Source: Phallusia mammillata (lineage: Eukaryota). From it: a stretch of 64,000 bases of DNA. Below are positions 12,400 through 64,000 of the stretch, one piece after another (position 1 is the stretch's first letter; the number at the start of each line of letters is the position of its first letter). The stretch is taken from assembly GCA_965637545.1 (NCBI GenBank), contig OZ281498.1:11656001-11720000 (forward strand), read 5' to 3'. The notes beneath the pieces are model-generated. The model was not told where the DNA came from and did not search any database. It saw only the letters and a list, made by a program, of their open reading frames with translations. The translations under genes and the position numbers were made by a program.

Positions 12400-13780
12400 C
12401 CTTTCGATTTCCACTCTCTTTTCTACTGTGATGAGTTCATTGTCATTGTTTGTTTATGTTCGTGTGCGTGCGTGTGTGAACCGCTACCTCTTGATCGACA
12501 GATCGGTTTTTGGCTCTTTTTTAGGAGTGATCACGTGACGTAATGAAGTCGTATTGGATAGACTGGCTCTAAAATTACAATCCGTTATACATCCAACTTT
12601 GAGTTAAAATTTGCCTTGTAATTTGATACAATACATTGAATATTAATATTCTATTCTGCAATAAAACAATAATTATTTCTGACTCTGGTCGTGACCCCTT
12701 CAAAGGTTCGGCAAACCACAGGTTTTCCCTGCGTTGCACACCAAGCATGATTATGTCGATGTTTTGTAACTTGCGGTGCTCGTTGCCGGTCGCGTCATGT
12801 TTTTCTCGTTTTTGTTTCTCGTCATAACATGAGCGTTATTTTCAGTCAACGTTTTTGTTCTTTTTACACACGAAAATAAATTTCATAAGAAACCAAGCGT
12901 GTCCAGCGTGTTGGGAGAAACCTCCGCATCTAAATTATACCAAGACTCAAGTATTAGGTTTCATCGAATGACGGTTTGAAACAGGATTTGCCACTCTATA
13001 ATTTTACAGTTTGTTGTCATAAAATTACCATGTCTTGTTTAAAATATTGGTTGGAAAGTAGCGTGTCTATAACGTATCTTTTCGCAGCTGTTCCTTGCTT
13101 TTTAACATGCTTGCGGGCTAGAAACGAAGCATACTTCCTGGTAAGTTGTTGGCCAACATAGTCAGCAAATACAACAGCAGCTGGCAGCATTTTATTGTCA
13201 CATAACATAATAAATAGTAAGTTATAAGGAAAAGAAAGCCATTGGAGACACAAAAAATACAGTTCCGAACTTTGCAGAGAAAAAACGAATGAACCCAATG
13301 GAAAGTAATGCGACATGTGCGACATAATGCACGTTAACCAACCAAAAAATATTTTCCCGGACAACGGTACGACGGTACATCACACAATATTTTTTGTGAT
13401 AACAGATCGGCTACAATTTAAACACTTAATACATCTCGCACCGCCATGCTGAAAAAATATTGTTGGCAACTTATTTTAACAAAATACAACTTGGAACAAC
13501 TAACACCAACTAAACAAATAAAAATTGCAACGTTTGCACATCAGACCACAACATTGGCATACTCGACTAAAAAGCATTTAGAAAACCAATATTGAAGAGA
13601 GACGCTCTGCCAATAACCGTGCCTGCAGCGTTTGGCAAAAACTGAACACATAATACTCAAAAGCGCTGAATACACAGTGGAAACACGAGTACAGACAGTA
13701 TAGCAAAACCGATTCCGTTTAAATAGTGCAGAGAGCGAGAAACAAACAAATAGCACAGCTTGAGGTATCTTGGCATTGGG

Positions 13781-40100: not shown

Positions 40101-42902
40101 GGTGACGCACGTTGTGCTATCGTCTTTCGCCTCTTCTTGCTCCTTAGATATTACCCTGTTAATGTATAGGTTAAAACCTAAAACATTGGGCATTGAAATA
40201 ACCGTGTGGTTGCGTGTCTTACAAAAAAGCGACTGAGGTTTGTTACTAAAGTAAAAGCAAATGGTACTGGAACAATTACGAAATATTTGGGTGTGGTAAT
40301 GTGATAATTGTTTTGATTTAATTATCTAAAAAAAGCGTGTTCGCCAAGTACTTTGATTGCCATTTATTGTAACCATACAAATGTCATTAACTAATCAAAC
40401 AACAAAGTTCTGACCTTGGAAATGCACAGAAGGGCAGAGTTGCAACCACTAGAAGAATTCCTGTGATGAGGTAACCCATCCACCACGCGCCAACCCATAG
40501 AGAATCTTGAGGAAGAACAGGAATGTTTGTTGTGTTTACCCAACCACTGTCCACCCATATGTTGGTCGTCAGGGATCCCAGAATAAAACCGAAAGCAGGA
40601 CCCAACAGCGATAGAGCTGAAACTACCCCTGTAAATACGGGCATTGTGACATTTTTACCATCGTTAGTACAATGGATTATACATTTGAAAACTTATGAAA
40701 CGCTACATACTCTCGGGCATTGTCGATGTTTTACGCCATAGTTCATGTCAAAAAACTTTATAGCTTGTAAAACATTGAGCTGTTGCACATTTTTACGATG
40801 GTTGCAATATGTCATCGAATTATTAGTACAGAATTTCATCACGGAAATGTAACCTACAATCGTGTATTACAGACTACCTCAACAGCCATTTAAGCCACAC
40901 AGGGTGCCTGCTGTGAAGAAAAATGCATTTAGTTGGTTGAGTGGCACTAAGCATTTTTCCTGACATCGACAAACACTTTCCAACTTCTGCCGCAAGCAGA
41001 AGGCTTTCGACAGTAATCTGCGTTCGGCGGTTACGGCTTCAAAACAATAATTTTTGAGTGGCGGGTGGGATTAGGAAACCACTGAACCAACACCGTTCAT
41101 ATTAACGTCCCAGGTGGTATATTCGCTACTTGCCGAAAATCAATGTCAATAAAACAGTTTGCGGCGTATTTGAAAATGTAGAGAGTAATTTCTGTGGCAT
41201 CTTAAAGTTTCTTTGAAAATAAAAATATTTAATGAATAGGTTGTGGGAAACTCACCAATGTAAACGGCTGAATTGCTGCATGATGCGAAGTCATCGATGA
41301 AGGACATGCCCAATGGGTGAAGTGGAGAGTGACCCATACCTTTCAAAACGCTACCGATCGCAATAAACACATACAGGAAAGAATCATCGCCAGAATCGTT
41401 GCCGGCCGTGAGTTCAGTTTTACGAAAATCCTGAATCGCAGCCCAATCCACTTCGGGCATGAGAGCAGGTTTGCAGAGCTGATTTGAACTCTGGTTTGAT
41501 AACATCAGTGAAAAATCTTCGTTTTGTTGAATCTCGGGATTACGGTCATAATCCTGATTCACCTCACTTGTACCGGCCAAGTGCAGCAGCCGAGAATTGC
41601 TTGCTTGTGACATCACGGCTTCGCTACTGTCTTGTGCGGCCCGCATCTGCGCTGACCACAACTGCAAAGTCCGCCGAAGTTTCTGGATATCAGTGATATT
41701 GGCGACGTGCCTCAGTCCTGAGAGCATCGATGTGTCGTTGCTGTTTAGAAAAGCCGTCAAGTTGCTCACAATCATGACAGTTTCGTCGCGTTGAGGTGTT
41801 TCGTCGTTTTCATATTGCCTACTATTGTCTTCGTTATTGCTTGATTGCATAGGTAATAGGTTCATGAGCACAACTTGTCTTGACAAAGCGCCATTTTTGG
41901 GTAGAGCGCGTTCAAGGTCATAGCGATCACCCACAAACTGTGGCATGCATGAGATTAAACTCGAAGCAGCCATCATCAGCGATCCAATTGCAATTGCACG
42001 AGGTCTGTTAGAGGGAAAATCAAATGAATAAAACCCTGCGTAGTGTAAACGTCAGTGCAGATAGACACTGCGCATGATTGTCTCAGCATGCGCTACATAA
42101 CTCATTTCAAATTTTGTAACCGAACCTAAGCAACAGCAAACCAACAAACCTGTGCCATTTCGACCCATAATAACTGACGAATAAAATGACGCTTAGGTTA
42201 CCGATGTGAAAACAACTTTGTAAAACTCCAATTGAAAATGTGTTAAGGCGGTATCTTCGTTCAATCGATGTCAAAGCGCTTTTGCTGTATCTATCCAAAA
42301 CAAGCGCAAGGTATTTGATGGTGGATGCACAACAATGCAGCACAGAGCACTAAACACCCGCCGGCCATATCTAATTTCGACAAGCTCGTGTTTGGTGTCT
42401 TCAAATTCTTAAACTGTAAACAACTATTGTGTTTACATAAACAGTTTTTTGTCAGAAAAACAAATGTCGTTTAAAGTTGAACTATCTTGGTAACGGTTAG
42501 AAGGCATTATGTTTAATTTTTGCATATGTGCAATAATGATTCTGGCAATCCTGAAGTCACGTTTGAAGATATAGAACGCCAATATGTAACTATAAATTGC
42601 TGATGTAAACAATATTTTAGCTGCCAAATAGTTACTTACCCACTTCCCATTACTTGAACGAGTTGCAAAAGTGACAAACAAGCCACAAATGTACGAACGC
42701 GCAGAAAAACTGGGGTTGAATTTGTGTTTCGATGCAGTTGATCTTTTCCCTTTTCCATTTTCAGTTTTGTGGAACCACACTTTTTAATGTTTTCCTCCAT
42801 CAGGTTTTTCTTCTCCGTGCAACCGTTTGTGCAACTCTGTGAGCTCACTTTTTGCGTCAACAAGTTATTTTGTTCTTGATCTAATTTACCATTTTCTTTC
42901 AT
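34103..42902 (-). CDS. SLCO: Organic anion transporting polypeptide, SLCO2-like
   Basis: Exons 42902-42640, 42290-42150, 42004-41256, 40628-40415, 40155-39617, 39192-39028, 37800-37608, 37321-37192 (Kazal: CIGSCACTDTYSPVCDVTMNITYRSACHAGC), 36921-36700, 36419-36273, 34252-34103. Motifs SLLQLVQVMGSGYSKSALTSIERRY, FVSYYG, WVGAWW, RVLAWIPAP; the TM1 sequence resembles remembered SLCO2A1/2B1. Confidence 0.92.
35528..36208. mobile_element. hAT (Buster-type) non-autonomous element, 681 bp, in the last SLCO intron
   Basis: TIR CAGGGGTGTCAAACTCG / CGAGTTTGACACCCCTG; TSD ACGTAAAT at 35520-35527 and 36209-36216. Confidence 0.92.
37841..38269. mobile_element. TAG-ended hAT-like MITE with CCGAA/TTCGG subterminal repeats
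   Basis: TIR TAGTGATGCACCGAA / TTCGGTGCATCACTA; TSD GTTTTGTA at 37833-37840 and 38270-38277; inserted ~40 nt from an SLCO splice acceptor. Confidence 0.9.
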
Positions 42903-44777: not shown

Positions 44778-45013
44778 CAGTGGTCGGCAACCGCCGGTCC
44801 GCGGCCCGGTACCGGTCCGCGAGGAGTTCGTTACCGGGCCGTATAGGTTTTCAGGTTAAATCCTATTAAACATTTTGCCCATGTATCCTGGGGATGATAA
44901 ACTAATTTAGGCGTTTTTATTGCTAAATATATGTAGTTTTTTTGAAGACCGGTCCGCGATAAAATTTTAGTTTCAAAAACGGTCCGCAGTGCAAAAAAGG
45001 TTGCCGACCCCTG
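44778..45013. mobile_element. hAT MITE family 1 copy 2, opposite orientation to 8515-8749
   Basis: Same internal sequence as 8515-8749 in reverse complement; TSD ATATAGAC at 44770-44777 and 45014-45021. Confidence 0.92.
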
Positions 45014-45343: not shown

Positions 45344-46306
45344 TCACGGAGCTGTTCTTTCACAAATAGCGCGTTGATTTCTATGGCAAGAATGATCGTC
45401 CATAAGGTATTGGTTCGGGCCGATGTGTCCGCAATCCACTGGCGGACTTCCGCCCCCACTATTGTTGGGCTCACCTGATGCCCAATGTGTATTTTCCTCT
45501 GTGGCCATGACACCATCAACCCACTTCCAGCTTCCTTCAACGTCGATGTCGCTCAGACCGATCCAATAATACTGCGGCCCGTGTGGCTTTACCAAGTGCT
45601 CTATGATATCTCTAAAATTACAAAAATCTTAATTAGGAAGAAATTTAAAGTTTAGAAAAACTTTTATGTTTACAACTAACTTAAGTTTTCAAACAAAAAT
45701 CGTATTGAATATGAGAAAACTGGTACGTTGAGATTAACGTTCGTTGTACTAATTATATAATGTTTCGTGCTTGCACTAAAAATTAAACCCTCCATATACT
45801 TGCGTGTTTGTGGATCTCTCATTCCACTTGTCACCAAATCACCACCAATGGATTGACAATATGTTCTGGCTTCTTGCCATGAGCTCAGAGTGGTACGGAC
45901 GTGGTATTGCTTCAGAATTGGTTTCCAAACTGACCCTATAAAATAGTTACACATCAAACAGACATAAAGACGTATTGGGAATTAAGATTTAGTTTTTGTA
46001 CAGCCAGCCATTACCTGTTAAAGTTCGCAGTTTCTGTTCTACATTTGAGATACGTTTTGTAGATTGTATTCCAGGCTGACCCCTAGGCCCAGGCAGACCA
46101 ACATGGCCAGGTGGACCGGATGGACCCACGGGTCCCGGATTTCCTGGAGGTCCTTGCTTTCCCGGCCTTCCCTGCATTGAAGACATATTGTATGCAGGAG
46201 ATGTCCACAAAGATCTTGCAGTTTTGCAAACAAGAATTTCATCATTTTCAGCGTGAGACAACACTTTTACAACTACGTTGATTAATACCCAAATCAAAAA
46301 CTTCAT
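45344..46306 (-). CDS. Lectin A: secreted collectin (signal peptide, Cys, 12 Gly-X-Y triplets, neck, EPN C-type CRD)
   Basis: Exons 46306-46015, 45935-45800, 45611-45344 in frame; [36 protein letters not shown]; [22 protein letters not shown]. Confidence 0.92.
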
Positions 46307-46393
46307 GGCTTAACTTTATAATGTCCTTTAAAATAAATATTTATAGAATAAAATAAAATAATCCCCGCTCATTGACTTTAAAAAAGATTAAAG

Positions 46394-46561
46394 CAGTGGT
46401 TCTTAACCTTTTTCCTTGCTGCACCCCTTTTAAATCACCAACCAATTTTCGCACCCCCTTTTGTAATTGCCTAAATAATAAAACCATTGTAAATAAATTT
46501 TTATACAAGCATGCCCGCACACCCTAGAAACAGTTCTCGCAACCCTGGTTAAGAACCCCTG
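46394..46561. mobile_element. hAT (Buster-type) MITE 87 bp upstream of the lectin A start codon
   Basis: TIR CAGTGGTTCTTAACC / GGTTAAGAACCCCTG; TSD GATTAAAG at 46386-46393 and 46562-46569. Confidence 0.9.
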
Positions 46562-46788
46562 GATTAAAGAAACACTGTTTTTATTGCGCGACGTGCTTAT
46601 AAGTTTCAAGTGTAATTCATTTTAAAGTTGAAGCAATTTCGTTTACAGTAGTTGTTTCTTTTGCCATACTATTCGTTAAATTGTGCCGTTAATCTCGATT
46701 GGTTTCAGAGCAGTTATTCCCTTATATATTTACACACTGTTTTCCCTAAACTATTTGCAACTTTTCCCACGTTTTACCGTGCTGCAAC

Positions 46789-47283
46789 CAGGGAGTCGAA
46801 CTGGAACTGAACCCGAACCCGCGAACCGGTTTGAGCGATTAATTTCATTAAAACCGAACCGAACCCGAACCGCTAATCACGATTTTCTAAAAACTCGAAC
46901 CGGAGTTGAATCCTATTTTTTGTTTGGCGTTGGACGCCGTTGGATTTTTATTTTTGTGACTTTTTTTCAAAACAGCGTACTGAAGAATACGCGAGATAAC
47001 ACTTATAGGGCGTGTCAAAAATAACAGTGCACGGTCAAAAATATTTTGGAGTTTGATAAGGCCAAGTAGATGATGGGTAGAATTAAATTGAAACGAATGA
47101 AAATTTGAACCGGTTTAAAAACCGCAAACCGGTTTGGAGCGGATAATTTGCCCAAACCGGAACAAAACCCGAACCCGAAAATATACATTTTTGAAAACCT
47201 GAACCGAACCCGAACCCTTAAAAACAAAACCAAGTGAACCCGAACCGAACTTGAACCCATATGACAAGCGATTCGATTCCCTG
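46789..47283. mobile_element. hAT-like MITE with GAACCG/GAACCC subterminal repeats
   Basis: TIR CAGGGAGTCGAA / TTCGATTCCCTG; TSD GCTGCAAC at 46781-46788 and 47284-47291. Confidence 0.88.
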
Positions 47284-47475
47284 GCTGCAACCCAACAAAA
47301 AATAAATAAATAAAACGGCGTACAAAAATTTTCTTTATAAATGCTTAGTAAGACCTAGTAAGATTTTTGCACTATTTTTAAATATTTTACAACTAATATT
47401 TAAACAAGTCTACAAAATCATGCTTTACTTTCAAGGCCTAGAACATTGTTTTCAAATCTTTGCCACGGCCTAGAA

Positions 47476-47899
47476 CAGTGGTTCCCAACCTGGGGTCTCG
47501 CGGACATTAGGGGATCCGTAGAGGCAAACAGTACAATATTTTTAAGTTTCCAAACCGTTTTTACCATCCCGCAAGAAAGTGCAGACTGTTATTAAACCTT
47601 TGGAAAAAGAAAACTTACTTTTGTATGATTGTTACATCACAACACACATGAACAATGTAACTTTTAGCGTATATTGCTTTGTTTCAAGTATTGTACACCA
47701 GAAACTGCTTCTTCGTTGCATTGACTGCTAATACAGAACTTTATTGAGATTTAAGGACTGTGGCCGTTGATTAAAATTCTGCCCAAAAAAGCGAAAATAT
47801 AATGCAGGAAACAAAAAACATAACAAGACTAAATTACTTCCGCGGACCTATAAAATTTATTAAAGGGGTCCGTGACTACAAAAAGGTTGGGAACCACTG
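47476..47899. mobile_element. hAT (Buster-type) MITE (duplicated at 48744-49167; relative at 54550-55032)
   Basis: TIR CAGTGGTTCCCAACC / GGTTGGGAACCACTG; TSD GCCTAGAA at 47468-47475 and 47900-47907. Confidence 0.92.
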
Positions 47900-47971
47900 G
47901 CCTAGAACATTGTTTTCAAATCTTTGCCACGGCCCAGAACATTGTTTTCAAATCTTTGCCAATGTCTTGAA

Positions 47972-48194
47972 CAGGGGTCAACAAACTACGGCCCGCGTGG
48001 TCATTTCTCATAAGATGAGACTAACTATACAGTTTAACAGTTGCATTCACCAGCATATCTTGACGCACCTATAAAAATCGCCTCGCAAACTAAGTTTGGA
48101 AAGACGGCACTAGGGCATGAAAACTCTGCGGCCCGCGCGAATCATTATTATTAATCTTATCCGGCCCGCAGTGAAAAAAGTTTGGTGACCCCTT
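47972..48194. mobile_element. Older hAT MITE (duplicated at 49240-49462)
   Basis: Imperfect TIR CAGGGGTCAACAAAC / GTTTGGTGACCCCTT; degenerate TSD GTCTTGAA / GCCTAGAA (6 of 8 match). Confidence 0.75.
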
Positions 48195-51100
48195 GCCTAG
48201 AACATTGTTTTCAAATCTTTTTTCTCATGCCTCAGCAATTTCATTTAAAAAAAACTTCAAAACCTTTATGCGGTGAAACAAAATCGTATTATTTCAAAAA
48301 ATCAGCTTCTTCACATTAAAAAACCTAACACAATAACAAGGTTTGAACAAAGTACAAAACCAACAGGAACCTCAAGTTGAGAAACACTGCTTTGCACACA
48401 ACTGAGCTGTATGAACTTGAAAAAAATATTTTTACGCACAGCAGGATTCAACACACACAGCTGTTGCTGAACCGAACCCGAACCCTTAAAAACAAAACCA
48501 AGTGAACCCGAACCGAACTTGAACCCATATGACAAGCGATTCGATTCCCTGGCTGCAACCCAACAGAAAATAAATAAATAAAACGGCGTACAAAAATTTT
48601 CTTTATAAATGCTTAGTAAGACCTAGTAAGATTTTTGCACTATTTTTAAATATTTTACAACTAATATTTAAACAAGTCTACAAAATCATGCTTTACTTTC
48701 AAGGCCTAGAACATTGTTTTCAAATCTTTGCCACGGCCTAGAACAGTGGTTCCCAACCTGGGGTCTCGCGGACATTAGGGGATCCGTAGAGGCAAACAGT
48801 ACAATATTTTTAAGTTTCCAAACCGTTTTTACCATCCCGCAAGAAAGTGCAGACTGTTATTAAACCTTTGGAAAAAGAAAACTTACTTTTGTATGATTGT
48901 TACATCACAACACACATGAACAATGTAACTTTTAGCGTATATTGCTTTGTTTCAAGTATTGTACACCAGAAACTGCTTCTTCGTTGCATTGACTGCTAAT
49001 ACAGAACTTTATTGAGATTTAAGGACTGTGGCCGTTGATTAAAATTCTGCCCAAAAAAGCGAAAATATAATGCAGGAAACAAAAAACATAACAAGACTAA
49101 ATTACTTCCGCGGACCTATAAAATTTATTAAAGGGGTCCGTGACTACAAAAAGGTTGGGAACCACTGGCCTAGAACATTGTTTTCAAATCTTTGCCACGG
49201 CCCAGAACATTGTTTTCAAATCTTTGCCAATGTCTTGAACAGGGATCAACAAACTACGGCCCGCGTGGTCATTTCTCATAAGATGAGACTAACTATACAG
49301 TTTAACAGTTGCATTCACCAGCATATCTTGACGCACCTATAAAAATCGCCTCGCAAACTAAGTTTGGAAAGACGGCACTAGGGCATGAAAACTCTGCGGC
49401 CCGCGCGAATCATTATTATTAATCTTATCCGGCCCGCAGTGAAAAAAGTTTGGTGACCCCTTGCCTAGAACATTGTTTTCAAATCTTTTTTCTCATGCCT
49501 CAGCAATTTCATTTAAAAAAACTTCAAAACCTTTATGCGGTGAAACAAAATCGTATTATTTCAAAAAATCAGCTTCTTCACATTAAAAACCTAACACAAT
49601 AACAAGGTTTGAACAAAGTACAAAACCAACATGAACCTCAAGTTGAGAAACACTGCTTTGCACACAACTGAGCTGTATGAACTTGAAAAAAATATTTTTA
49701 CGCACAGCAGGATTCAACACACACAGCTGTTGCCACTTCCTCAATACGCATTTTCAGCATTTAATTCTGCTGATTGTACCCGGCCAGATGTTTTAATGGT
49801 GGTGGGAGAAAGTGTCTGACTCCTCAACGACGTTGAACTAGCACACTGAAAAAAGTCGAATCTAAAATAACGTCATATGGACGTTACTCGTAGAGCTACG
49901 ATTGGTGCACCGCTACTCTACGTCATAACAATAAACAAACAACTAAAGTGACAAAATAAAACTGTGGTAAATATCATTCACTGTGGAAAATTATTAATGA
50001 TGTGCGAGAGATTCGATTTGCTCATTTTTTTGGGCGAATCAGCGGCTTTTCAAAAATAGCCGATTTGGACCAAATTACAAATATATTTTGGGATCTTGCA
50101 ACCTAAATATCGCAATAAATTTCGCGCAAAACATGTGTTTCCATCTAATTACGTAACACAAAATCTAATCTTGGCAATTGTATTTGGCCCCACAGTGACA
50201 AAGGTTGCACACCCCTGGTTTACACCATCCTCTTTTATGTGAGCCGCTATATCAGGTCTATACTCAATTAGTTTTGTGAAAGGCCCAGACAGAAAAAGTA
50301 AAAATACCAAAGGTCTGGACACTTCTGTCAATAATGCAAATGCAACATGTCTTCGCCTATTTTAGTTATAGGTAATGTGTAAAATCTTGGCCAAGATCAA
50401 CACATTTGTTTAAGCCGAATGGTTCTGTTTGCAAAACAAAAGCTTGAATTGGGCACTATACATTAAATTACTCCTCGCGAGAGTATTGACACAACGACAC
50501 ACAAAATACAGTTTATCTAGTTTGGCAGGATTACTTCGTAAGGTTATGATTCAAAATTCAGTTTATTGCGTCATAGATATATTTGTGCGCAATAAAATTT
50601 TGTTAATAATGCACTGGAATAATGGACGATTTTGTCGTCACAAAGTTGTCAATCTGGCCTTTCAAGATTTTGGAAATACTATAGGCTCCTCGCGGTACTC
50701 GGAGAATCGCTATGCGGACTCGAGTTAACTGTCGCTACATAGCAACGATCACGAAATTAACACACAATATAGCCACATCTAATACCCCAAAGGTCCGGAT
50801 AAGGACCGCGGTCCACCATTTGGGTTGCCCTGCGCTATATGCAGCCTTGCACTCATGGCTGGAAGGGAAAACGTGATTACGTCAAAACCGAACACGCCTT
50901 TGTGTGAGGCCACAAATCGTTTAGTTGTTTCGGCTTAGTTTCTTTGTCACTACTACCGATTATTCGGTTTCGTTCAGGAAAATATTTGTACATATTACTT
51001 ATTCGGTACATCACCAGAAAATATCCTAACGTCTTATCTCATTAAACAAAATGCTAGTAAATTATAATTTGTATAAATAAGACACTGAAGATGCTTGCAT

Positions 51101-51250
51101 AAGCGAAATAATATTTTCTGTCTATGATAGCTGACTGATTATAGTCTAAAAATAAATGTTTCCAAACTTGTGGCTATTAAACAAACGTTTAGTAAATACC
51201 AATAGGTGGCGCAAAGAGCATATTGTCCAAAATCTCTGGAAATGCTGACG

Positions 51251-51369
51251 GATAGGGGGCAGGAACTTGACCGAATGGTCTAGCGCGCCTGACCCATATA
51301 CAGACATAAAAAACCTGATTGAGATTCGTCCCCGGGAGTGCCCTGGGTTCGAACCCCGTGAAAAAAAAG
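51251..51369 (+). mobile_element. tRNA-derived SINE-like element, copy 1
   Basis: A-box-like TGACCGAATGGTCTAGCGCG and B-box GGGTTCGAACCC followed by an A8 tract; second copy at 63934-64000; possible short TSD GCTGACG (51244-51250 and 51370-51376). Confidence 0.65.
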
Positions 51370-51960
51370 GCTGACGCTTAGGACTATTTGGGTGTGGTTT
51401 GGTAGTTAAATGACGTTGTAAGAATGTAACTATTGCGAAAACTAATGTTTAACGCACTTAACTAGCCATGTGTGTCGTTTCACGCCACTTATCCGCATTT
51501 ATTAATTATTTTCAAATGTGAGTTATAATGTTAGTAGTTCTTCTTCTACCATCACATACAAATTTAAAACATCTTGCGAATTTTATCATTTAAAGTCTAT
51601 TTAGTGTTAGTGGTATATGCTTACTATAGTTTTGGAACTGCTGTCGTAAAGTTTACATTGCATTTCTACAATAAGACAAAAAGACGATTCGAATATGCAA
51701 TTTTTAAATTAAGTCTGACTTATTTTTTGATTTGTTGCGAAAAATAGGACTGATGCAAGCGTTAACACGAAAGTAATTGCATGTAAAACGATTTAACAAC
51801 GAAAAGTTGGAATAGCAAATGTGCGAAATTTACTCACCGTTTCGGTCCCCCAAAACACCTTAAAAAAACACTGCATGGGTGTAAATGAAATCAAAATGAT
51901 ACAACTTAAGATCATAAACTCAGGAACATAATGTGATACAATGCCTTTAAAAACTTGTGA

Positions 51961-52862
51961 TTATGGTGCAACTCTTTCGCAAATCGCACGCTGTAGTCCG
52001 CTGCAAGCATGATCATCCATTTGATAATTATAATAGTGACCAATATGCCCACAGTCAATATTTCCCCCGGTTAGCCCTGCATTATTAGGCTCCTGCGGAG
52101 CGAAATCCGTATTGTGATTGTTTGACGCCACTCCGTCAATCCATTTCCAAGTTCCCTCTCTTTCTATATCGCTCAGACCTATCCAGTAATACTCGGGACC
52201 AGCTGGTTTCACAAAATTCTCGATAATGTATCTAAAAAATATTAATTTATCCAAGTGTAAAATAGTTTTGCCTTTGAACTATTTTTTACCGGGTCACAGT
52301 GGTGCAAAAATCTCTAATAGTTTGAATTTGCAATAGCAACAAAGAATTTAATATATTTAAATGTAAATTATTGGCAACAAATATCTCTGTTAGAATCTAG
52401 AGCCCAAAATCTAGCCTATACTTTATTGCCTCGCCAAAAAATCGATTTGGTGGTTTAAATATTTCAAGCTCATACCTTCGTGTTTGTGGATCTCTCATAC
52501 CACTTGTCACCAAATCACCACCAATGGATTGACAATATGTTCTGGCTTCCTGCCATGAACTAAGAGTGGTACGAACGTGGTATTGCTTCAGAATTGGTTT
52601 CCAAACAGGCCCTTGAACAAAAACAAATCGTTTAAAGTTGTTTTAGGATTTACAATCAAATTTTATTCCTACCCGAAAAATCATTAAGTCTGCTTTCAAC
52701 ATTTTTTATTCGAGCGTCGTCATTTTTCTGAAATAAAGGCAAGCAGCCCGATTTGTGAGCGGGAACCGATTTACAAACCAGCAAATTTTCCGTTTCTCCC
52801 TGACACATCGCCGAAGATGCAAGGCAACAAACAACAAACAACCAAAATTGTACGGCATTCAT
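51961..52862 (-). CDS. Lectin B: secreted collagen-less C-type lectin (signal peptide, two Cys, neck, EPN CRD)
   Basis: Exons 52862-52673, 52611-52476, 52231-51961 in frame; same intron phases and 136-nt exon 2 as lectin A; QEPNN and MDDHAC. Confidence 0.92.
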
Positions 52863-54549
52863 TTTGGCAATCTAATTTGCGTATCAGTTACTCAACTTCA
52901 GAATACTGTGTCATTAACTAAACACGAGTAAGGTATTTGTGTAAACCGGCAATGCAAGCCTTATATACAATTTTACCACGTTTAGGAGCTTTTTTTTCTC
53001 CAGCTTAAAACTATCAAACTTGACAGGCCATTAAACATTTGGTTTGTGACTTTAAAATGTCAAAATTAAACTACAGGATGATGAGTTTTTAGTGAAATTA
53101 AATGCACCATTAATTTACGATCGTTCAACTATCACGTTTATCACGAAACCAATTACGACTAAACCGTTTGGTTTATATCCACTTTCACTGTCATGATTGA
53201 TTAATTACAAGCCGTAAGACACATTACTCTTAGATTACGACTATAAGCAGCAAGTACATACAGGTAGATACGTTAAAGTGTTTCCAGAAAACTTTCTGAA
53301 CATTGACAGCAACAAATTTAAAGTTGGTTTTCAGCTTTAAACTTTCGGTGGTACAGGGTTTACGGCTGTAATTAAACAAATAAACGATGTAGCCCAGATT
53401 TAATGTCTCAGAGCACAACCACTGTAAAATTTTTGTTTGATAACTTTAAAATAGCCTTGTTGAGTAAAGGCTTGGGGCCTTCGTTTCAAGTATTTTAAAT
53501 TATTTGAATTATTTGATTATTGACTTAAAAGGGAAAACTTTATTTGATTATTTGAATATTTAAAAACCTTTATTTGATAACAGCCCTAAGAGGGATATTA
53601 GCAAAAGCTTTTACATTTGGCTTCAAAGTCGTTCATAAACTAAAATCACAAAATTACACCTTCAGTATTCAGTATTCTGATTTCAAGCAACATGCTGAAG
53701 TATGCCAATTTTCGCAATTAGTTGAATAATCATTTCTACATGGATTTCTGAACATAACATTTAACGTTATCAATTATCAAAATTCTTTGCAGCTACGCAC
53801 TTTTCGCATTTTCCTGACACGATTATCCAAAAACGGACTAATTACAAATTAATAGTTTAGTAAGCTGCCTGCGACCTATGTGTTGGTTTTTATCTCTGTT
53901 TTACTTCCTTGCAGTGAAGAAAGAAAAACCTTCACAACGATTTCAGTTTGTTGCGTTATTTTAAATGCACTTTCTCAGCATGTAGTACACCAAAAAATAA
54001 ATGAATACAATTATGAAAATGTGTTTTGGTTTATCTGTCACATTTCCATCATGAAGTTTTTAGTCGTAATAAATTATTGCAATGTTAAATGTGGCACTTG
54101 CAAACTAACGGCTTTTCCCAAAGGGCACCGACAACTTACTAAACTAGGCATCCCAGGGCTACTACTGGGCTATGTTACTTGTGAAACAGTTATGATGCAC
54201 TTACATTTGTTGTTCATTCATTGAAGGCAAAACAGTAACAAAATCGCATTACACATAAGTAATTAACGGGCGCGGTAAGCAAAACAATATCCACGCTTTC
54301 CTGACACATGATATTCTGATAAAGGTACAAACCTTTACACAACATGTAGTTTAATAGTTTATCCCCGGGTATTGTGGACGCCTAAAAGTAAATTAAGAGG
54401 GGGGTAACATCTTACTAATCTATTAACAAACATTTTTTCAATACAATTTAGTTAGAGGACAAGAATATACAATATGTAGCACATTTTCAAAAAAAGGTGC
54501 ACTGGTCAAAGTTAATTTTTCCAAAGGAGTGCAATATATAGTTGTACAC

Positions 54550-55032
54550 CAGTGGTTCCCAACCTGGGGTTCGCGGAGCTCCGAAGGGGTCCGTAAGATG
54601 GTTTCAGGGGGTCCGTGGAGGCAAACATTTATAATACCAGAAACCAACAGTAAAATATTTGTAAGTTTTCGGAGCGTTTTTACAATCCTGCATACCCGTG
54701 CAAACTGTTAATCAAAATTTCGGGCCAGGAAAAATTACGTTTTCGTGATTGTTAGCTCCATTGTGACATCACAGCACACATGAACAATGGAAATTATAGT
54801 GCTTTGTTTCAATCTTGTACACAAGAAAATGTATCTCTTTGTTGCTACAGTACAGAACTTCATTGAGATTTAAGGCTTATTGTAAAGGTTGATTAAAATG
54901 CTACCAAAAAGTATAATAACGTTTAATGCATAAAACGAAAAACATAGAGAGACGTACGGAAAATTGGGGGGTCCGCAGACATATAAAATTTATAAAAGGG
55001 GTCCGTGACTACAAAAAGGTTGGGAACCACTG
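54550..55032. mobile_element. hAT MITE related to 47476-47899
   Basis: Same TIRs; TSD TTGTACAC / CTGTACAC (7 of 8 match); the paralogous flank near 60490 lacks the insert. Confidence 0.85.
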
Positions 55033-56373
55033 CTGTACACGATGGCGTCTAAATTTAGCTGGGTTGGGCACACTTGATTTAGTGAACTAAATTTGCCCAA
55101 CTGCGCCATCTGAGGAACTTTCATATGACTATTTTGTCCGTTATAGTATAACAATCTCAAACAAAGATATTGACAATTTAATTGAACACTTTCGTTCTAA
55201 GAAAAACGTCTTTTTGCGTGTATTAAACGTGTATTAAGGTATTACTTTCTCTCTCTATCATTCCCTCGGAAGGTTTCGATGAGAAAAAATACTTTTAATT
55301 AGTGTCTTTAACAAAATACTTTGCAAAAAAGATTTTCGCAGCTGTGTCCTGTGCTTTACCATAGCCACCTTTCCTTAGTGTGTTGCTATGTTTGTTGCTT
55401 CAAGATGTACGTGAACAAAATACAATACAATAGAATCATCACAACATAGCACATAAGATATTGTATTTGACTGTGGTGCAAGTACAGTTAGTAAAAACAT
55501 TTGTCTGAGAAAATGATAGAAAGCAACTAAGTGATATTAGTACAAGGTGACTCCTCGCCTACAGTAGGGTCAAGATTACAGTATATAAGTGTTTTTTTGT
55601 TAGGCAAGTGCAGGTTTTTTTTAAGGTTTGGTTTGGGTGACCGCTAAGTAGTTTTAAGAGACCGCAAGTGTTTCATTTAAATACCAAAAAATAGCCATAT
55701 TTAATTTTGGGTAACCGCTGGAGAAATTTGGGGGACCGTTTCGGTCCCCCAAAACACCTTAAAAAACACTGGGCAAGAGCAAAGAGTTTGTGTCGCCTTT
55801 CAAAATCCGCAATTTTGAAATGATGTTTGGTTTATTTTTTCGTTTGTTTGAATTAGAACTAAAAATTGCTTTGCAAAAAAGGTTTTCACAGTTGTGTCCA
55901 ATGTTTTTACTTTAGCTACATTGAATCAATGTGCTATGTTTAACGCGTTAAGTTAAGGTAAGCGTGAATAAAATACAATACAATTAATGGCGTAGACAGC
56001 GGAAAACTTTGGAAGAGGCAAAAAACTTTTAGTGCATGTGAAACTGACCGCTCTTAATCTGCCAGACAACTCTGATGTGTAACGAAATACGAAAACCATA
56101 ATGTGTAACGAATCTCCAGTAAGGTTGGTTTGACAAGGTAAGCATCATTTTTTTATTCTAAGTTACATTACATTTGCCGTAAAATGAAATGATGCATATT
56201 ATGTGTGAAGAATCCATTTTGCCGATGTCCTTGCAACGTTTTGGTTGTCTGTAAATGTTGACCCTGGCCCAACACTCTGGACAGCTCCACTTCTGGCACG
56301 CCAGTAATTGGCTTTTTCTAAGTGTGTGTTTCCTTCGCAGAAAAACGTGTTTGATCGTGTTCGTGATCGAAAC

Positions 56374-56750
56374 TAGAGATGCACTGAATCAGCTAATTTT
56401 CGGTTTGGCTGAAACCAGATCGTTTATGACGTCACGCAAAGTCGTACGCTACGCGTTTGATATGAAAAACATAAGTTGTTCTACCAAGAAAACAGTGCAA
56501 AACACTTGTGTTTCGTCATCGCCTCAGTTCTGTGGGGTTTAACATTGCCTCAGGCACGATTGTAAGCCCGCCAATGAATTGTTGTCTGGAGTGCGAATAC
56601 TGGACGCGATTTTAGTTGTAGCGTATAGTTTAAAAATGTGTGGTACTATATAGGGCTGAAAAGACACGTTTTTCGCTTTAAATTTGTGTTCGTAACAGAT
56701 TCGGTTTCCGCCGAATCGCAACAAATTATTCGGCCGAAACTGAATCTTTG
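56374..56750. mobile_element. Partial TAG-ended hAT-like element related to 59024-59692
   Basis: Starts TAGAGATGCAC; internal blocks are shared with 59024-59692; right end not found. Confidence 0.6.
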
Positions 56751-56835
56751 TAAAACTGGCAACATCCACGCGTTTTCAGAAATTAGATCATTTCTACATC
56801 TATATCTCATTAGATTCAGCCATATAGGCTACAAT

Positions 56836-56910
56836 CAGGGGTCGCCAAACCACGGCCCGTGGGCCGGATCCGGCCCTCGAGGTCATTTCATCTGGCCCGC
56901 GAAAAAAAAA
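56836..56910. mobile_element. hAT MITE left-end fragment related to 47972-48194
   Basis: CAGGGGTCGCCAAACCACGGCCCG...GGCCCGCG; no right TIR seen. Confidence 0.55.
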
Positions 56911-57855
56911 GTTAGGCCGCTACAAGTCTCGTAATGCCGATAGATGGTACAAAAGGGCAGTAACGTCTGTAAAAAAATTGTGAAAATACGGACGATTAGG
57001 ATTATTTGAGTTGGAATGAGGTTTGTAATGAAGTGACGTTGTAACTTGTAACTGACGTGAAACTTACTTCCTCACATTAAACGAAACTTACTTCCTCACA
57101 TTAAACGTATTCCCCATAACCATGTGCTACTGTTACATAATTATTACGTCACATGTGCTCTGTGGCGCCCCCAGTGTGCTTTCTGTAAGTAGCGATACTC
57201 GACGTGGCAAGGAATGCACGTGGTAGTCGTGATTTAGTCGTTGTGCAAGACAGATGTGATTTTCCTGTCTGGATTTTATATGCCGGTTTTTATATTGCCA
57301 ATAAAGATTGCAACAATTGTTAACTGCAGATCCATACCGAACAGAAAAAGGCGCGTTACGCTACTTCATCAGATTTTTTAACAATCGACATATATCAATC
57401 GTTTTCGGATGCAAGTTGTAATGTTGGTAGTAGTTCTTCTACCATTACATACAAAAAAATCGTTTTATACATTTTATCATTTGAAGTTTAACTATGTTCA
57501 TTTACTGTAGTGGTAAACACTTAGCGCAGTTTGGAAACCGCATGTTGTCTTTAGTGTCTATAGTGCATTTCTGCAATAGTTTTTCTGGACAAAATTGCTA
57601 TTTAAAAAATGCAATTTTAAAATGTCCGGTTTATGTTATTGTTTATTTGAAAGTTGGCAGATGTGCGAAATTTACTCGTTCTGTGAAATTGTGAATGATA
57701 AATACAAATGAAAGTTCTACATTTAATCGACTTAGAAATAAACTGGGTACATTTAATATCATGATACAGATATAAATGAAATCAAAATGATACAATTTAA
57801 GATGGTAAATACAGCAGGTATACAACGTGGTACAATGCCTTTTAAAAACTTGTGA

Positions 57856-58717
57856 TTATGGTGCAACTCTTTCGCAAATCGCACGCTGTGGTCGACTGCA
57901 AGCATGGTCATCCATTTTATAATTATAATAGTGACCAATATGCCCACAGTCAACATTTCCCCCGGTTAGCCCTGCATTATTGGGTTCACCTGAAGCGAAA
58001 TCCGTATTCTGACTGTTCGACGCCACTCCGTCATTCCATTTCCAAGTTCCCTCTCTTTCTATATCGCTCAGACCTATCCAATAATATTCGGCACCAGCTG
58101 GTTTCACAAAATTGTCTATAATGTATCTGAAAAACCATAATATTCATTTATTCTTTACGTAAAATCAATTTTACCTTTGAACGTTTTAGAGGTTAATGGT
58201 GCAAAATGGTGACTCTTAGTTTCAAATTTGCAACAGCAAATTCCAAGGATACATTAATATATTTGTAAATTATTGGCAGCAATATCTCTGTTGGAACCGA
58301 AACTATGCTTTTATTGTTTAGCCAAATATTTCAAGCTCATACTTGCGTGTTTGTGGATCTCTCATTCCACTTGTCACCAAATCACCACCAATGGATTGAC
58401 AATATGTTCTGGCTTCATGCCATGAGCTCAAAGTGGTACGGACGTGGTATTGCTTCAGAATTGGTTTCCAAACAGGCCCTTAAAAAACAAAAACAAATCG
58501 TTTAGAGTTGTTTTGCGATTTGCAATCCAACTTTATTTGTACCCGATAAATCATCAAGTCTGTTTTCAACAGTTTTTATTCGAGTGTCATTCGGCAAGCA
58601 GCCCGATCTGTCAGCCGGGACAGATTTACAAACCAGCAGATTTTCCTTTTCTCCTTGACATATCACCGAAGATGCCAGGCAACATACAATACACAACCAA
58701 AACTGTACGGCATTCAT
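57856..58717 (-). CDS. Lectin C: collagen-less C-type lectin, close paralog of B
   Basis: Exons 58717-58543, 58478-58343, 58126-57856 in frame; MNAVQFWLCIVCCLASSVICQGEKENLLVCKSVP; GEPNN and MDDHAC. Confidence 0.92.
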
Positions 58718-59023
58718 TTTGGTAATCGAATTTGAGTTCCAGTTACTCAACTTTAGAATACTGTGTCAATACCTAAACAAAAGTTAGTTGTGTAAACCGG
58801 TAACCCAAGCCTTATATACAATTTTACCACGTTTAGGAGTTTTTTTTCTCCAGCTCGAAACTACCAACTTTGGAAACGCAGTTCAAAAATTCGACTTGAA
58901 AGTGACGAAATAACGATACAGGTTGATGTGTTTTCGGTTAAAGGAAATGCACCATTAAGTTTCGATCGTTGAACTGTCACGTTTGTCACGAAAACAATTA
59001 CAGCGAAACCGCTTGGTTTATAT

Positions 59024-59692
59024 TAGAACCGAGTCGGCTAACTTTCGATTTGGCCGAAACCGAAAATTCGGCAGTTTTACCGAAAAAATCCTGCCGAATC
59101 AACCAGATCATTTATGACGTCACGCGAAGTCGTATATGCTAAGCGTTTGATACGAAAAGATAAGTTTTTCTACGAAGAAAACAGTTTAAATACTAGTTTT
59201 TCGTCATAATTTCAGTCCTGCGGGGTTTAACATTGCCTCAGGCTTGATCGCCGGCCTGCAAATGAATTACTGATTTGTTGTGTGCAGTGCGAAAAACAAT
59301 AGGCTAATACAGTGGTCGGCAACCGCCGGCCCGCGGTCCGGTACCGGTCCGCGAGGAGTTCGTTACCGGGCCGTATAAATTTTAATGTTAAACGTTTTGC
59401 CCATGTATCCCGGGCCGACCCCTGGGCTAATAGATAAAAAATATAAAATACTTAACTCGATTTTTGTTATGGCGTAGTTTGATAGATTGTGTGGTAACTT
59501 TTTGTTATGGCGTAGTTTGATAGATTGTGTGGTAAAAGGCTGAAAAGACACGGTTTACGTTTTCAATTTGTGTTCGGAAAAGATTCGGTTTCGCCCGAAT
59601 CGCAACAAATTATTCGGCCGAAACGAAATCTTGGTTAAATTGTCCGATCCGGAAGAATAAATTCGGCAAACCGAATATTCGGTACATCTCTA
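59024..59692. mobile_element. TAG-ended hAT-like element upstream of lectin C, containing a nested MITE and a 38-bp tandem duplication
   Basis: TSD GTTTATAT at 59016-59023 and 59693-59700; right end TTCGGTACATCTCTA; the homologous position upstream of lectin B (~53171) has a single GTTTATAT. Confidence 0.85.
59310..59424. mobile_element. Internally deleted copy of hAT MITE family 1, nested
   Basis: Left end CAGTGGTCGGCAACCGCCGG as at 44778; right end GCCGACCCCTG; TSD GGCTAATA at 59302-59309 and 59425-59432. Confidence 0.88.
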
Positions 59693-62029
59693 GTTTATAT
59701 CCACATTCATTGTCACGATTGATTAATTACAAACCGCCATTATTTACAAAACCGCACAACTGTTTCACCTGATGCAATTACGTTTAATGTCAACTATTTG
59801 GAATAAAATATTCATATTGACATAGGTATTTTTTGAACACATAACTCATAGAAAATGACTGTTAGCAGCAAATTGTGTTTTCAGAAAACTTTCTGAACAA
59901 TGAGAGCAACAACTTTAAAGTTGATTCGCAGGTTTAAACGTTTGTTTACAGAGGGATTATGGCTGTTATCAAACAAATAATTATTTGGAACTTTATCGAA
60001 TAACTTTTTTCCTATTCAGTATACCTCGATGTTGGTGCAAAATCAATTTAATTAAACACATTGGTGTGTTTCAGTGACATGAGATCCTTAAAAGCAACAA
60101 ATCGCATTGCCGTTTAACAGGCGACACTATTTATTGCTGTAGGCAAAACACATTCCACGATTTTCTGGCACATGATATTCTGATAAACGTACTAAATTTA
60201 AAATGCTGTACGCACTCGGTATGCTTTCACTGTATTTATATTGGTAAATAACTTACCTAGCACACAACAACTTGCAGTTTAATTGTTTATTCCCGGATCC
60301 ACTATTGTGTACGCTTTAAAGTAAATTAACAGAGGATAACATCGGTGGGACTCACTAATCCATGAACAAACCCTTTCCCAATACAATTAAGTGACAAGAC
60401 AAGAATATACAATATGATACACATTTTCTGTAGCATTTTCACAAAAGGTGCACTGGTCAGAGTCAGTTTTTCCGAAGGAGTGCAATATTTAGTTGCTCAC
60501 GATGGCGTTTAGATTTTGAGTTTTATGTTTTGTGCTATGTTTGTTGCTTCAAGGTACACGTGAACAAAATATAAAACAATATAATCATCATAACACATCA
60601 GATATTGTAGTTCATTTCGTGCCAGTACAAATACCAATCAAGGATAATGTGCTTTCGGTTCAAGGATAGGCGCAATTAAGTTTCGATAATGAGCTTCAAC
60701 TTGATAACAGTTTTACTTTTCCTAAAGGTTCGTATTCCGTGAGTCTGAATTTTGCATGTACTTTTTTTGCCTGAAGGGATAAGAATCAAATAGATTTTGA
60801 AGTGACCTCAAGCCGTTGCCAAGACAACTAATCTGATACTAATTCCTGTAACAGTATATGTGCTCATGCCAAGTCGGTTGCGTAAGTGAAATAAATATAG
60901 TTCTATTGCACGTAAATTGGATTGCCAGAAACTTTTTTGACGAATAAATTTTAGTGAGATATCTAGAAAGTGTTGGTAACGCCTAAAAGGTATGTACCGT
61001 TTTTTAAAAAACAAGCTTAAACAACAAGCTTAATATCTAAAACGGCTTTGAAAATTATGTGAAAATTTCTATCAGGTATGTACACACGTAAATTAAATAA
61101 AATGGCCCCAGATAACGATTATTTTAACGTTGGTTTCCTTTTTTGAATATCATACAACGCTGAGGCAATATCCTAAAGCGAAAATAATTGCACAATAATA
61201 AAACGATGATGTGTGGAGCAGAATTTATAATTCCAAATTACTGATGAAACTTAAAATCTTCGTGCAGCATCCGGTATGTGGTTTGAAAGTGATGTGACGA
61301 TATAGGACGTAGTGTTTTCGGTTAAAGCGTCATTAGGTTTCAATCATTGAACTTTCACGTTTGTTACGTAATCATTGATAATGAAATCTTTTGATTTATA
61401 TCCACTTTCACTGCCATGATTGATAAAATACAAACCGTAAATATTTCCCCCCATATTTAACCAGTTACAGCAGTAATGTTTATGTCAACCAGTGGATACA
61501 ATATCCATAATTATAGGTATTCGTTTGAACAGACATTTACACTTTTGAACAACTTGCGCGCAAGCCAATAACTGTGAGCAGCAAGACAGTTGATTCGCAG
61601 CTTTAAACTTTCGTTGACTGAGGATATTAGGAAAAGCTTTTACATTTGGGTTTGGAGTTGATCATAAACTAAAGTCACAAATTGCACATTAGATCAGCAT
61701 TAAACTCACTGGCAATGTTTTATAAATTTTCTCAGACAGTTAAATAATCACTTCTGTTACACATTTTTATTTTCTGTAACACATTACACATTTCGGTTAC
61801 ACATTTTTGAATCATTTTCCTGTCACGATTATCCAAAAGCGGACTAATTACAAAGTAAATGGTTTAGTTGCCTGTCTGCGACCTATGTGAGTTTTTGTTG
61901 CTGTTTCACTTGCTTGCTGAGAAGAAGGAAATACTCAAGTCATAACGATTTCAGTTCGAAGAGTTATATTACATGCACTTTCTCAGTATGCAATAAATCA
62001 TGAATTCAACTTTAAATAGAGGATTAAAC

Positions 62030-63844
62030 CTAAGCTGGCCATTTTCGTTCACACAAAGCGAAAAATTGTGCGGAACAAGACAGATCATCCATTTTGTACT
62101 TGTAAAGATTTCCAACGTAGGCACAATCAACATTGGATCCTCCACCAATGTTGTTTGGTTCACCACGTGAAAAATCTGTATTCTCATCGGTTTTGGCAAT
62201 TCCGTCCACCCATTTCCAGCTTTCCTCTTGTTCAATGTCGCTTAATCCAATCCAGTAGCTGTGCGTTCCCACAGGTCGTATAAGGAGATCGATGATTTTC
62301 CTGTAACAATATAGCATTTTAGTGCCGAAAATGATTATTTGGGCGTAAACATTTGTTACAAGTGAAACATGTGAAAGACCAGATTCCACTTACTGTCGAA
62401 TAACTTGATCTCTCATTCCTTCGGTAACCAAATCTCCTCCAATCGATTGACAATAAGTTCTTGCCTCCTGCCAGGTGCTCCCGACATCTCGCAAGTGGTA
62501 CTGCTTCAAAATCGGTTTTCACAAATGATCTACGAACATATATGTCACTACCACCCGTTCTGAGCAACTGACATTTCAAGCTACCATTTAAGGCAACTTT
62601 AGCCGATATTTTGACATCTTTACTACAAAATAAAAAACTTAAACTTACCGCATATAGTTTGAATACTGTTTGATGTTGCTGCATCTGGACTTCCAGGTGC
62701 TCCAGGAGGACCTTGACGTCCATCTAATCCAGCAACACCGGGAGGACCCCTTTTACCTGGTGGACCTCTTATTGGCAAACTTGAATTTTATTACTACTTC
62801 AGACGACAGTCCGAAGACTGAAAACAGTCCTTTGTCGTGTCACCATACGAGAAATAAACGTATTTTCAGATAAAGGGTAGTCGATAATAATAGTAAACAA
62901 AAGAGGAAAAGCGAACGAAAGAGGTTAAATGTCAATAGATCGGCAGCAGAAATCAAAATCTATTGCACGCATGCAGATATTTGTGAACGGCATGGAATAA
63001 TGACAGTGTGTGAGCGTCTGTTAAATCAGGATGACCAAATAGCATGAAACGAATAATTGCACCAGGAGAAAGACTGGAAAGAAATGATGCGTTGAACTTA
63101 GCGTTTTCTGTCAGAATATTCGAAACAGTAGAGAACAAAATTGTGCGAGGACGAACCAATAGTGGACAGTTAAGAAACAAATGTTGCGTGGTTTCTACGG
63201 CCTGACATGCACAAGGGCGAAAGTGCCTGGGATTGATATAGAACTTTGTGAAATTGAACGAGAGAGTGAACGTTGCGACGAACACGGAGGGTTGTCAAAC
63301 CAAGGTCCTGTAATATTTTATCATATGAGGTGGTCCTCATACACCCTAAAATTAGTTTAGCCGATTGGTGTTGCACATTTTCTAGTACTTCACAGTCAGA
63401 GAGGTTACAGTTATCGAATAAAATATCGCCATATTCAAGTGTAGGAAGAACGCAGGACCTATAAAGGGTAAGGATGATATGCCGGGAGACTGTGTTAGAT
63501 ATTTTGCGCAATCGGTTAACTTGGATTTGTGCTTTGTGGCATATGTAGCGAATGTGGTCGTGCCAAGAAAGTGTTGGTGTAAATATAAGGCCGAGATATG
63601 TGTGTGCACGGGTTTCAGGCAAAGCTACACCTTTGAAAAAAAATTGAGGAAGATTGAAACTTTTACAAAGCGATAGTACTTTAGATTTGGAGGAAACGAA
63701 ACTTGAATTTGCAGGTGAAGATTTCCAAAACGATCGTGCAGACTTACATACAAGCAACTCGTCTGTTTGGCAAGAGTTTGAAGCAACCTGACAGACGAAC
63801 ACAAGCAACACAAACCACATAAGTTTACTTGTTTGTTTCAGCAT
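62030..63844 (-). pseudogene. Lectin D: collectin pseudogene (LINE insertion in exon 1, TGA in exon 2)
   Basis: Exon 1 is split into 63844-63699 and 62776-62649 (GPPGKRGPPGVAGLDGRQGPPGAPGSP); exon 2 62529-62394 has TGA at 62521-62519 where paralogs have Trp (VWKP); exon 3 62300-62030 is intact (GEPNN, MDDLSC). Confidence 0.9.
62789..63698 (-). mobile_element. 5'-truncated non-LTR retrotransposon (CR1/L2/Crack-like ORF2 C-terminus)
   Basis: HTYLGLIF..LSWHDHI, LYRSCVLPTLEYG, LENVQ, LRVRR, then in another frame CACQAVETTQHLFLNCP...MLFG...CNRF; 12-bp TSD (plus strand AAACTTGAATTT) at 62777-62788 and 63699-63710. Confidence 0.92.
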
Positions 63845-63933: not shown

Positions 63934-63961
<28 letters not shown>

Positions 63962-64000
63962 CACGGGGTTCGAACCCAGGACACTCCCGGGGACGAATCC
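63934..64000 (-). mobile_element. tRNA-derived SINE-like element, copy 2 (runs off the window end)
   Basis: The reverse complement GATTCGTCCCCGGGAGTGTCCTGGGTTCGAACCCCGTG followed by A28 matches 51323-51368. Confidence 0.75.

Follow-up and report, generated by a model that had tools for sequence, protein, structure and literature searches.

Mannose-binding lectin (MBL)-like collectins exist in the ascidians Ciona, Styela and Botryllus (PMC5465252, PMC8605247, PMC11312191), and the Halocynthia lectin GBL, in which a coiled coil takes the place of collagen, is reported to associate with MASP and to activate C3 (PMC8605247, PMC5465252), a report that PMC5465252 cites as Sekine et al. 2001. Ascidians are thus already known to have both collagen-bearing and collagen-less C-type lectins, and lineage-specific tandem expansions that include pseudogenes and gene conversion are known as well. 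Here, we analyzed four neighboring lectin genes, A to D, on the minus strand of a 64-kb stretch of the Phallusia mammillata genome (assembly GCA_965637545.1, contig OZ281498.1, positions 11,656,001 to 11,720,000; hereafter, the window). We consider it probable (roughly 0.7) that the four are genes for secreted C-type lectins that expanded in tandem, in a lineage-specific manner, from one ancestor, with A, B and C intact and D a dead copy. The useful details are a stalk difference contained within one exon, gene conversion limited to another exon, and a paralog killed by a long interspersed nuclear element (LINE).

Four copies of one three-exon plan

We read the four minus-strand regions and rebuilt their gene models from sequence (Table 1). 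All four genes follow one three-exon plan, in which intron 1 is in phase 1, intron 2 is in phase 2 and exon 2 measures 136 nt (4/4 genes); the introns of the rebuilt models are all bounded by GT..AG. These models agree with an earlier sequence-only reading of the window, which had proposed the same exon plan. A, B and C are intact, encoding 231, 198 and 193 amino acids, respectively. Exon 3 of each gene matches Lectin_C (Pfam PF00059; E = 3e-13 to 4e-10, 41-51 bits, cut-off 22.6), and together with the short-form pattern of four cysteines at the expected sites, this match places the products in the C-type lectin domain superfamily. A tblastn search with all four proteins found no further lectin domains within the window, and a word search with the open reading frame (ORF) of D exon 3 returned zero candidates.

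The copies part company in exon 1. Exon-1 alignments showed that a signal peptide, a cysteine motif and a neck are common to all four; the motif, first described as E-x-L-L/I-V-C-K, does recur in every copy, although its more exact form is [DE]-x-[IL]-L-V-C-K. Gene A encodes 12 uninterrupted G-X-Y triplets, scoring 31.2 bits against Pfam Collagen (cut-off 27.2), and D encodes 9, whereas B and C have none and instead carry a second cysteine within the shared pattern V-C-K-S-V-P-x-x-x-S-G-C-L-P; the triplet counts and the second cysteine are as the earlier reading had stated. A collagen tract lying between the N-terminal cysteine segment and the neck, as in collectins, is thus present in A, broken in D and absent from B and C. 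A and D also have in common the pre-collagen segment, with its sequon for N-glycosylation, and a stalk that begins P-G-K-x-G-P-P-G, with the lysine motif in the second triplet (P-G-K-Q-G-P in A, P-G-K-R-G-P in D). The segment between the cysteine motif and the neck spans 51-56 residues in A and D versus 14-19 in B and C; only ~40 mature residues precede the lectin head in the latter. At 61 and 64 bp, respectively, the first introns of B and C leave no space for a hidden exon.

Gene C is transcribed and spliced as modelled. A 652-nt contig from run X1 aligns to 57856-58126, 58343-58477 and 58542-58785, free of mismatches and gaps, leaving out exactly both modelled introns at GT..AG joints and containing no collagen exon. 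DNA run X2 shows neither of these joints, indicating that the contig is cDNA and not a retrocopy. Its 5′ end lies ~25-33 nt downstream of a TATATAAGG box, and it is therefore probably near full length; a TATA box is kept by both B and C. Two objections that the sequence-only reading had raised against itself, that a collagen-less copy is silent or that it splices in an unseen collagen exon, thus fall away for C. Its placement of the collagen difference inside exon 1 is supported both by the short intron 1 of B and C and by the direct joining of exon 1 to exon 2 in the C contig.

D is a pseudogene, once a second collagen-bearing copy, with two independent lesions. Its exon 1 is split by a 910-bp insert (62789-63698) bordered by a 12-bp target-site duplication, AAATTCAAGTTT, whose two direct copies (63699-63710 and 62777-62788) are identical, and removal of the insert together with one repeat copy restores the frame into the collagen. 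At the start of exon 2, the Trp codon TGG, kept by A, B and C, has become TGA (62519-62521). Translation of the insert yields the C-terminal portion of a LINE-type ORF2, including a Cys/His knuckle; this ORF is itself frameshifted. Pfam reported no family for the LINE fragment at E up to 10, and a protein atlas gave weak LINE-type neighbors only. In run X2, which possibly derives from the same individual as the assembly, read depth over the insert is ~10-25 times that of the flanks, and LINE copies ~96% identical are present in RNA-type runs. A DNA contig of run X2 (62467-62856, 0 differences) covers the stop codon of D as well as the insert's 3′ junction. No contig from three RNA-type runs aligned to the exons of D. 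Rescue of D by an alternative in-frame acceptor or by splicing out of the LINE was rejected, as neither restored the frame when the sequence was read through. The reconstruction of D in the sequence-only reading holds for its nine triplets but falls short for the gene, which carries a LINE insertion and a premature stop. With D a pseudogene, the locus has at most three working genes.

Relatives, exon histories and the collagen difference

In all four genes, the lectin head is split by the phase-2 intron. Its nearest solved structures are langerin, Endo180, DC-SIGN/DC-SIGNR, SRCL and the ascidian TC14 lectin; SP-D matches at 1e-6 only, and MBL is absent among the best 60 solved-structure matches. 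Vertebrate collectin heads are encoded by a single exon. The heads of this cluster are neither single-exon nor nearest to collectins, and the MBL-type comparison drawn earlier did not survive on these grounds or on that of the calcium and sugar site, which is non-canonical (see below).

A profile search of a 1.8 billion-protein representative library returned nearest proteins that are ascidian; the protein libraries searched hold no proteins of this window. The closest are Phallusia mammillata LCCL-EGF-lectins and lectin fragments and Ciona intestinalis type-II membrane lectins named "CLEC4F-like"; a Ciona savignyi fragment and contigs of one Logan assembly are also among the nearest. The best 150 profile matches are crowded with multi-domain lectins, and the best single-domain relatives score ≤108 bits. 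The subfamily is marked by the signature Y-C-x-S-[IL]-G-G-D-L...G-M-R-x-x-x-x-R and by [MV]-D-D in place of W-N-D. The phase-2 intron falls at the same codon in a Ciona locus (L003) and in a Logan contig (L002), and the Ciona phase-1 intron ahead of the head lies ~10 codons upstream of the position that it takes in the window genes. These conserved introns imply that one head cassette has been joined to differing N-terminal parts across ascidians. No collagen exons were found upstream of the Logan relatives L001 and L002, whose contigs are short. Separately, L001 (4399-4758; sample DRR090687) encodes a subfamily head without the phase-2 intron that L002, from the same sample, keeps, which points to a putative intron loss or retrocopy in the species of that sample. 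The Ciona intestinalis homolog in L003 (~7785-8359) has an apparent GC..AG intron, as read from sequence, before its lectin-head exon.

Within the cluster, B and C arose by duplication of a whole gene and remain 81% identical across 1.3 kb (~19% diverged at the DNA level). Nonsynonymous (dN) and synonymous (dS) divergence between their third exons are 0.06 and 0.20 (dN/dS ~0.3), and this comparison indicates that both copies are under purifying selection. The two units also form parts of a larger segmental duplication of ~5.9 kb (51496-55486 versus 57389-61990), in which colinear blocks 70-83% identical are separated by many insertions and deletions. A is far more distant: its exon 3 is 61% identical to those of B and C, with synonymous sites saturated (pS 0.91), and the introns are unalignable (~50% identical).

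Exon 2 departs from this pattern. A and C are 97% identical there (4/136 differences, dS 0.07) and A and B 93%, against a B-C dS of 0.19 for the same exon, and the contrast between exons 2 and 3 is pronounced (Fisher test, p = 3e-15). Exon 2 of D is only 68% identical to the others, so the identity among A, B and C does not reflect a constraint common to all four copies. The simplest history is that, after B and C split, a recent, short gene conversion with the C lineage as donor replaced A exon 2, over a tract of ~148 bp (45796-45943 in A, matching 58339-58485 in C). On account of this conversion, exon 2 was excluded from the trees, which were built from exon 3 alone with Phallusia and Logan-assembly relatives as the outgroup. 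There, A, B, C and D form one clade (support 94/92), contrary to the possibility, entertained earlier, that B and C are unrelated to A and D. The best inner topology was (D,(A,(B,C))), with support 79/74. A whole-head tree with Ciona, Styela and fish outgroups was discarded because its long branches attached inside the window group.

How the collagen difference arose is a closer call. We lean slightly toward loss or replacement of the collagen in the ancestor of B and C. In the best exon-3 tree, A groups with B and C and D lies outside; as the first exons of A and D are clearly homologous, a history of gain on this tree requires that the collagen arose at the base and later disappeared from B and C. 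The converse, a credible but lesser possibility, is that a B/C-like ancestor with a signal peptide, cysteine, neck and head acquired its G-X-Y tract, arising in or inserted into exon 1 of the A and D ancestor. Three observations count in favor of such a gain. An (A,D) clade is not rejected on exon 3 (approximately unbiased test, p-AU 0.27), and under that tree a single gain is most parsimonious; the nearest outgroup proteins, the Phallusia LCCL-EGF-lectins and Ciona membrane lectins, have no collagen; and no remnant of collagen-coding sequence was detected in the B/C linker, where similarity scores were no better than those of shuffled sequence. B and C might also be decaying collectin remnants with no function of their own, given that they are stalk-less and that the cluster shows birth-and-death turnover, D being dead. 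We regard this as very improbable: the frames of B and C are intact and their splice sites canonical, dN/dS is ~0.3 after ~20% synonymous divergence, both retain a TATA box, and C yields a perfectly spliced transcript.

Possible functions and other elements of the window

In the plan shared by the cluster, a signal peptide, the cysteine motif, the stalk and the neck are encoded in exon 1, and a lectin cassette split by the conserved phase-2 intron comes next. The neck would be expected to trimerize the products, assisted in A by the collagen helix; the N-terminal cysteines may link them into disulfide oligomers, which could bind glycans as soluble agglutinins or opsonins. That only A could dock a MASP-type protease, via the lysine borne on its collagen, is a tentative proposal that we rate as rather unlikely. 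No MASP gene lies within the window. H-ficolin is functional with 11 triplets.

Several features weigh against this functional picture. The neck, judged by eye, follows the heptad pattern I-x-x-V-x-x-x-L-x-x-[LF] for only ~2 heptads in A, B and C. P-G-K-x-G-P of A sits at the extreme N-terminal end of the 12-triplet helix, whereas the docking lysine of MBL, ficolins and C1q is mid-stalk. In the calcium site, E-P-N is kept in the alignment with langerin, but all four heads have Val or Ile in place of the Glu two residues ahead of the second cysteine, and M-D-D where W-N-D is expected, judging by alignments to langerin and to the ascidian relatives. Thus, 2/5 classical ligands of the sugar-binding calcium are non-canonical, sugar binding is uncertain, and E-P-N alone does not prove mannose-type binding. 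As for A itself, an exon-2 contig in run X4 differs from C at 4 positions, equal to the A-C difference count, with base changes that exclude B; this single contig suggests expression of A, with which it is consistent without being proof.

Following the sequence-only reading, a more elaborate model treats the array as a modular system of complement-activating recognition, in which A recruits MASP through its collagen and B and C act as decoys or hetero-oligomer partners that tune activation. P-G-K-x-G-P occurs in the collagen of both A and the dead D, C is expressed, and co-assembly would be permitted by similar necks and by the near identity between A and B/C of exon 2, whose product is the neck-proximal part of the head. 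A precedent is the collagen-less ascidian GBL, with its reported MASP association and C3 activation (PMC8605247, PMC5465252). Nevertheless, we hold this model to be improbable. MASP recruitment, decoy action and hetero-oligomers are all purely inferred; the head is of the langerin/DC-SIGN type, not the MBL type; the calcium site is non-canonical; of the 12 stalk triplets, it is the second that holds the lysine; and of the two copies with collagen, D is dead. Moreover, ordinary gene conversion accounts for the exon-2 identity without selection for co-assembly, and the idea that A and B/C were kept homogeneous in exon 2 because their chains co-assemble into mixed trimers or oligomers seems to us more doubtful still. 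Were it true, the number of collagen or lysine docking sites would vary among oligomers, and protease recruitment would be tuned by subunit ratio, making the stalked and stalk-less paralogs a rheostat.

Repeats and unrelated genes also occupy the window. Between A and B, a 1269-bp unit occurs twice head to tail (47199-49733; 99.6% identical), which may represent a tandem duplication of very recent date or, alternatively, a duplication introduced by the assembly. A very high-copy repeat covers 59056-60055 (peak 59256-59855), reaching a depth of ~74,000-85,000 in run X2 versus ~100-200 in the flanks; it is also abundant in the RNA-type runs, and partial copies lie at 56610-56758, 44778-44892 and 8635-8749. 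Elements resembling short interspersed nuclear elements (SINEs) at 51260-51375 (+) and 63941-64000 (-) end in GGGTTCGAACCCCGTG, which is tRNA B-box-like, and an A-tail; the second lies directly upstream of the D start and is cut by the end of the window. A scan of these SINE-like elements with ARAGORN called no tRNA. Unrelated neighboring genes span 10164-17543 and 39600-41976. They include immunoglobulin (Ig)-domain exons at 10164-11097 (+), a leucine-rich-repeat membrane protein gene with an R-K-K-R site at 13781-17543 (-), and an ORF at 41146-41976 (-) with an organic-anion-transporter-like signature, recognized by eye.

Table 1 Features of the lectin cluster, in window coordinates. CDS, coding sequence; UTR, untranslated region.
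Feature	Position	Strand	Remarks
Gene A exon 1	46015-46306	-	Signal peptide, D-E-I-L-V-C-K, N-M-S glycosylation sequon, 12 G-X-Y, short heptad neck
Gene A collagen	46064-46171	-	12 G-X-Y; P-G-K-Q-G-P at 46148-46165
Gene A TATAAATA box	46338-46345		
Gene A exon 2	45800-45935	-	136 nt; start of lectin domain; inside putative gene-conversion tract (~45796-45943)
Gene A exon 3	45344-45611	-	Remaining lectin domain with E-P-N and M-D-D motifs; stop codon
Gene B exon 1	52673-52862	-	Signal peptide, E-N-L-L-V-C-K, second Cys, neck; without collagen
Gene B TATATAAGG box	52959-52967		
Gene B exon 2	52476-52611	-	136 nt
Gene B exon 3	51961-52231	-	
Gene C exon 1 with 5′ UTR	58543-58785	-	CDS from 58717; UTR to 58785, the 5′ end of the RNA contig
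Gene C TATATAAGG box	58810-58818		~25-33 nt upstream of the 5′ end of the RNA contig
Gene C exon 2	58343-58478	-	136 nt; likely donor of A exon 2
Gene C exon 3	57856-58126	-	
Pseudogene D exon 1, part a	63699-63844	-	Signal peptide, D-E-L-L-V-C-K, N-S-S sequon; ends in first target-site duplication copy (63699-63710)
LINE (non-LTR retrotransposon) 3′ fragment	62789-63698	-	5′-truncated, 910 bp; sense orientation in D exon 1
Pseudogene D exon 1, part b	62649-62776	-	9 G-X-Y and shortened neck
Pseudogene D collagen	62686-62766	-	9 G-X-Y with P-G-K-R-G-P
Pseudogene D exon 2	62394-62529	-	136 nt; in-frame TGA at 62519-62521
Pseudogene D exon 3	62030-62300	-	

Comparison with known lectin systems

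The closely linked natural paralogs of the cluster have similar necks and are nearly identical over the first half of the head, but differ by a short collagen stalk bearing a candidate docking lysine. As a clean experimental pair, they could reveal the contribution of a collagen stalk to the oligomer state, MASP binding and C3 deposition of an invertebrate-chordate lectin.

The closest named heads are those of Ciona intestinalis LOC100175938 ("CLEC4F-like"; P0135, P0153 and P0188, the last being the longest isoform) and of Phallusia P0074 and P0152. With the cluster they share its signature, [MV]-D-D, the codon of the phase-2 intron and a phase-1 intron ahead of the head. Their N-terminal parts differ, however: the Ciona protein has a membrane anchor and a long coiled coil and the Phallusia proteins have LCCL and EGF domains, and neither has a signal peptide followed by collagen.

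Compared by layout, not by sequence, the MBL-like collectins of Ciona intestinalis, Styela plicata and Botryllus have the same collagen-plus-lectin architecture as A. The Styela clava "collectin-11-like" protein P0186 likewise has a short stalk, with 4 triplets and G-K-A-G-P, but its head differs, carrying Q-P-D and L-N-D motifs and joining the cluster by a very long branch. B and C share with Halocynthia roretzi GBL a collagen-less secreted layout, a likeness in layout alone, the searches having returned no GBL sequence, and differ from it in the shortness of the mature segment that precedes the head.

Like the vertebrate collectins (MBL, CL-K1/CL-L1 and SP-A/SP-D), A combines a signal peptide, an N-terminal cysteine, G-X-Y collagen, a putatively helical neck and a C-terminal head with E-P-N, and its stalk contains G-K-x-G-P, resembling the MASP-docking site. 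Unlike them, its stalk has only 12 triplets, all encoded with the neck inside exon 1, and the lysine lies at the N-terminal end of the helix; its head is split by a phase-2 intron, is nearer to langerin, DC-SIGN and Endo180, and has M-D-D and a Val or Ile for one calcium-binding Glu. That a "collectin" layout can rest on an intron-split, langerin/DC-SIGN-like head speaks for stalks and heads having been put together repeatedly rather than for direct orthology with vertebrate MBL.

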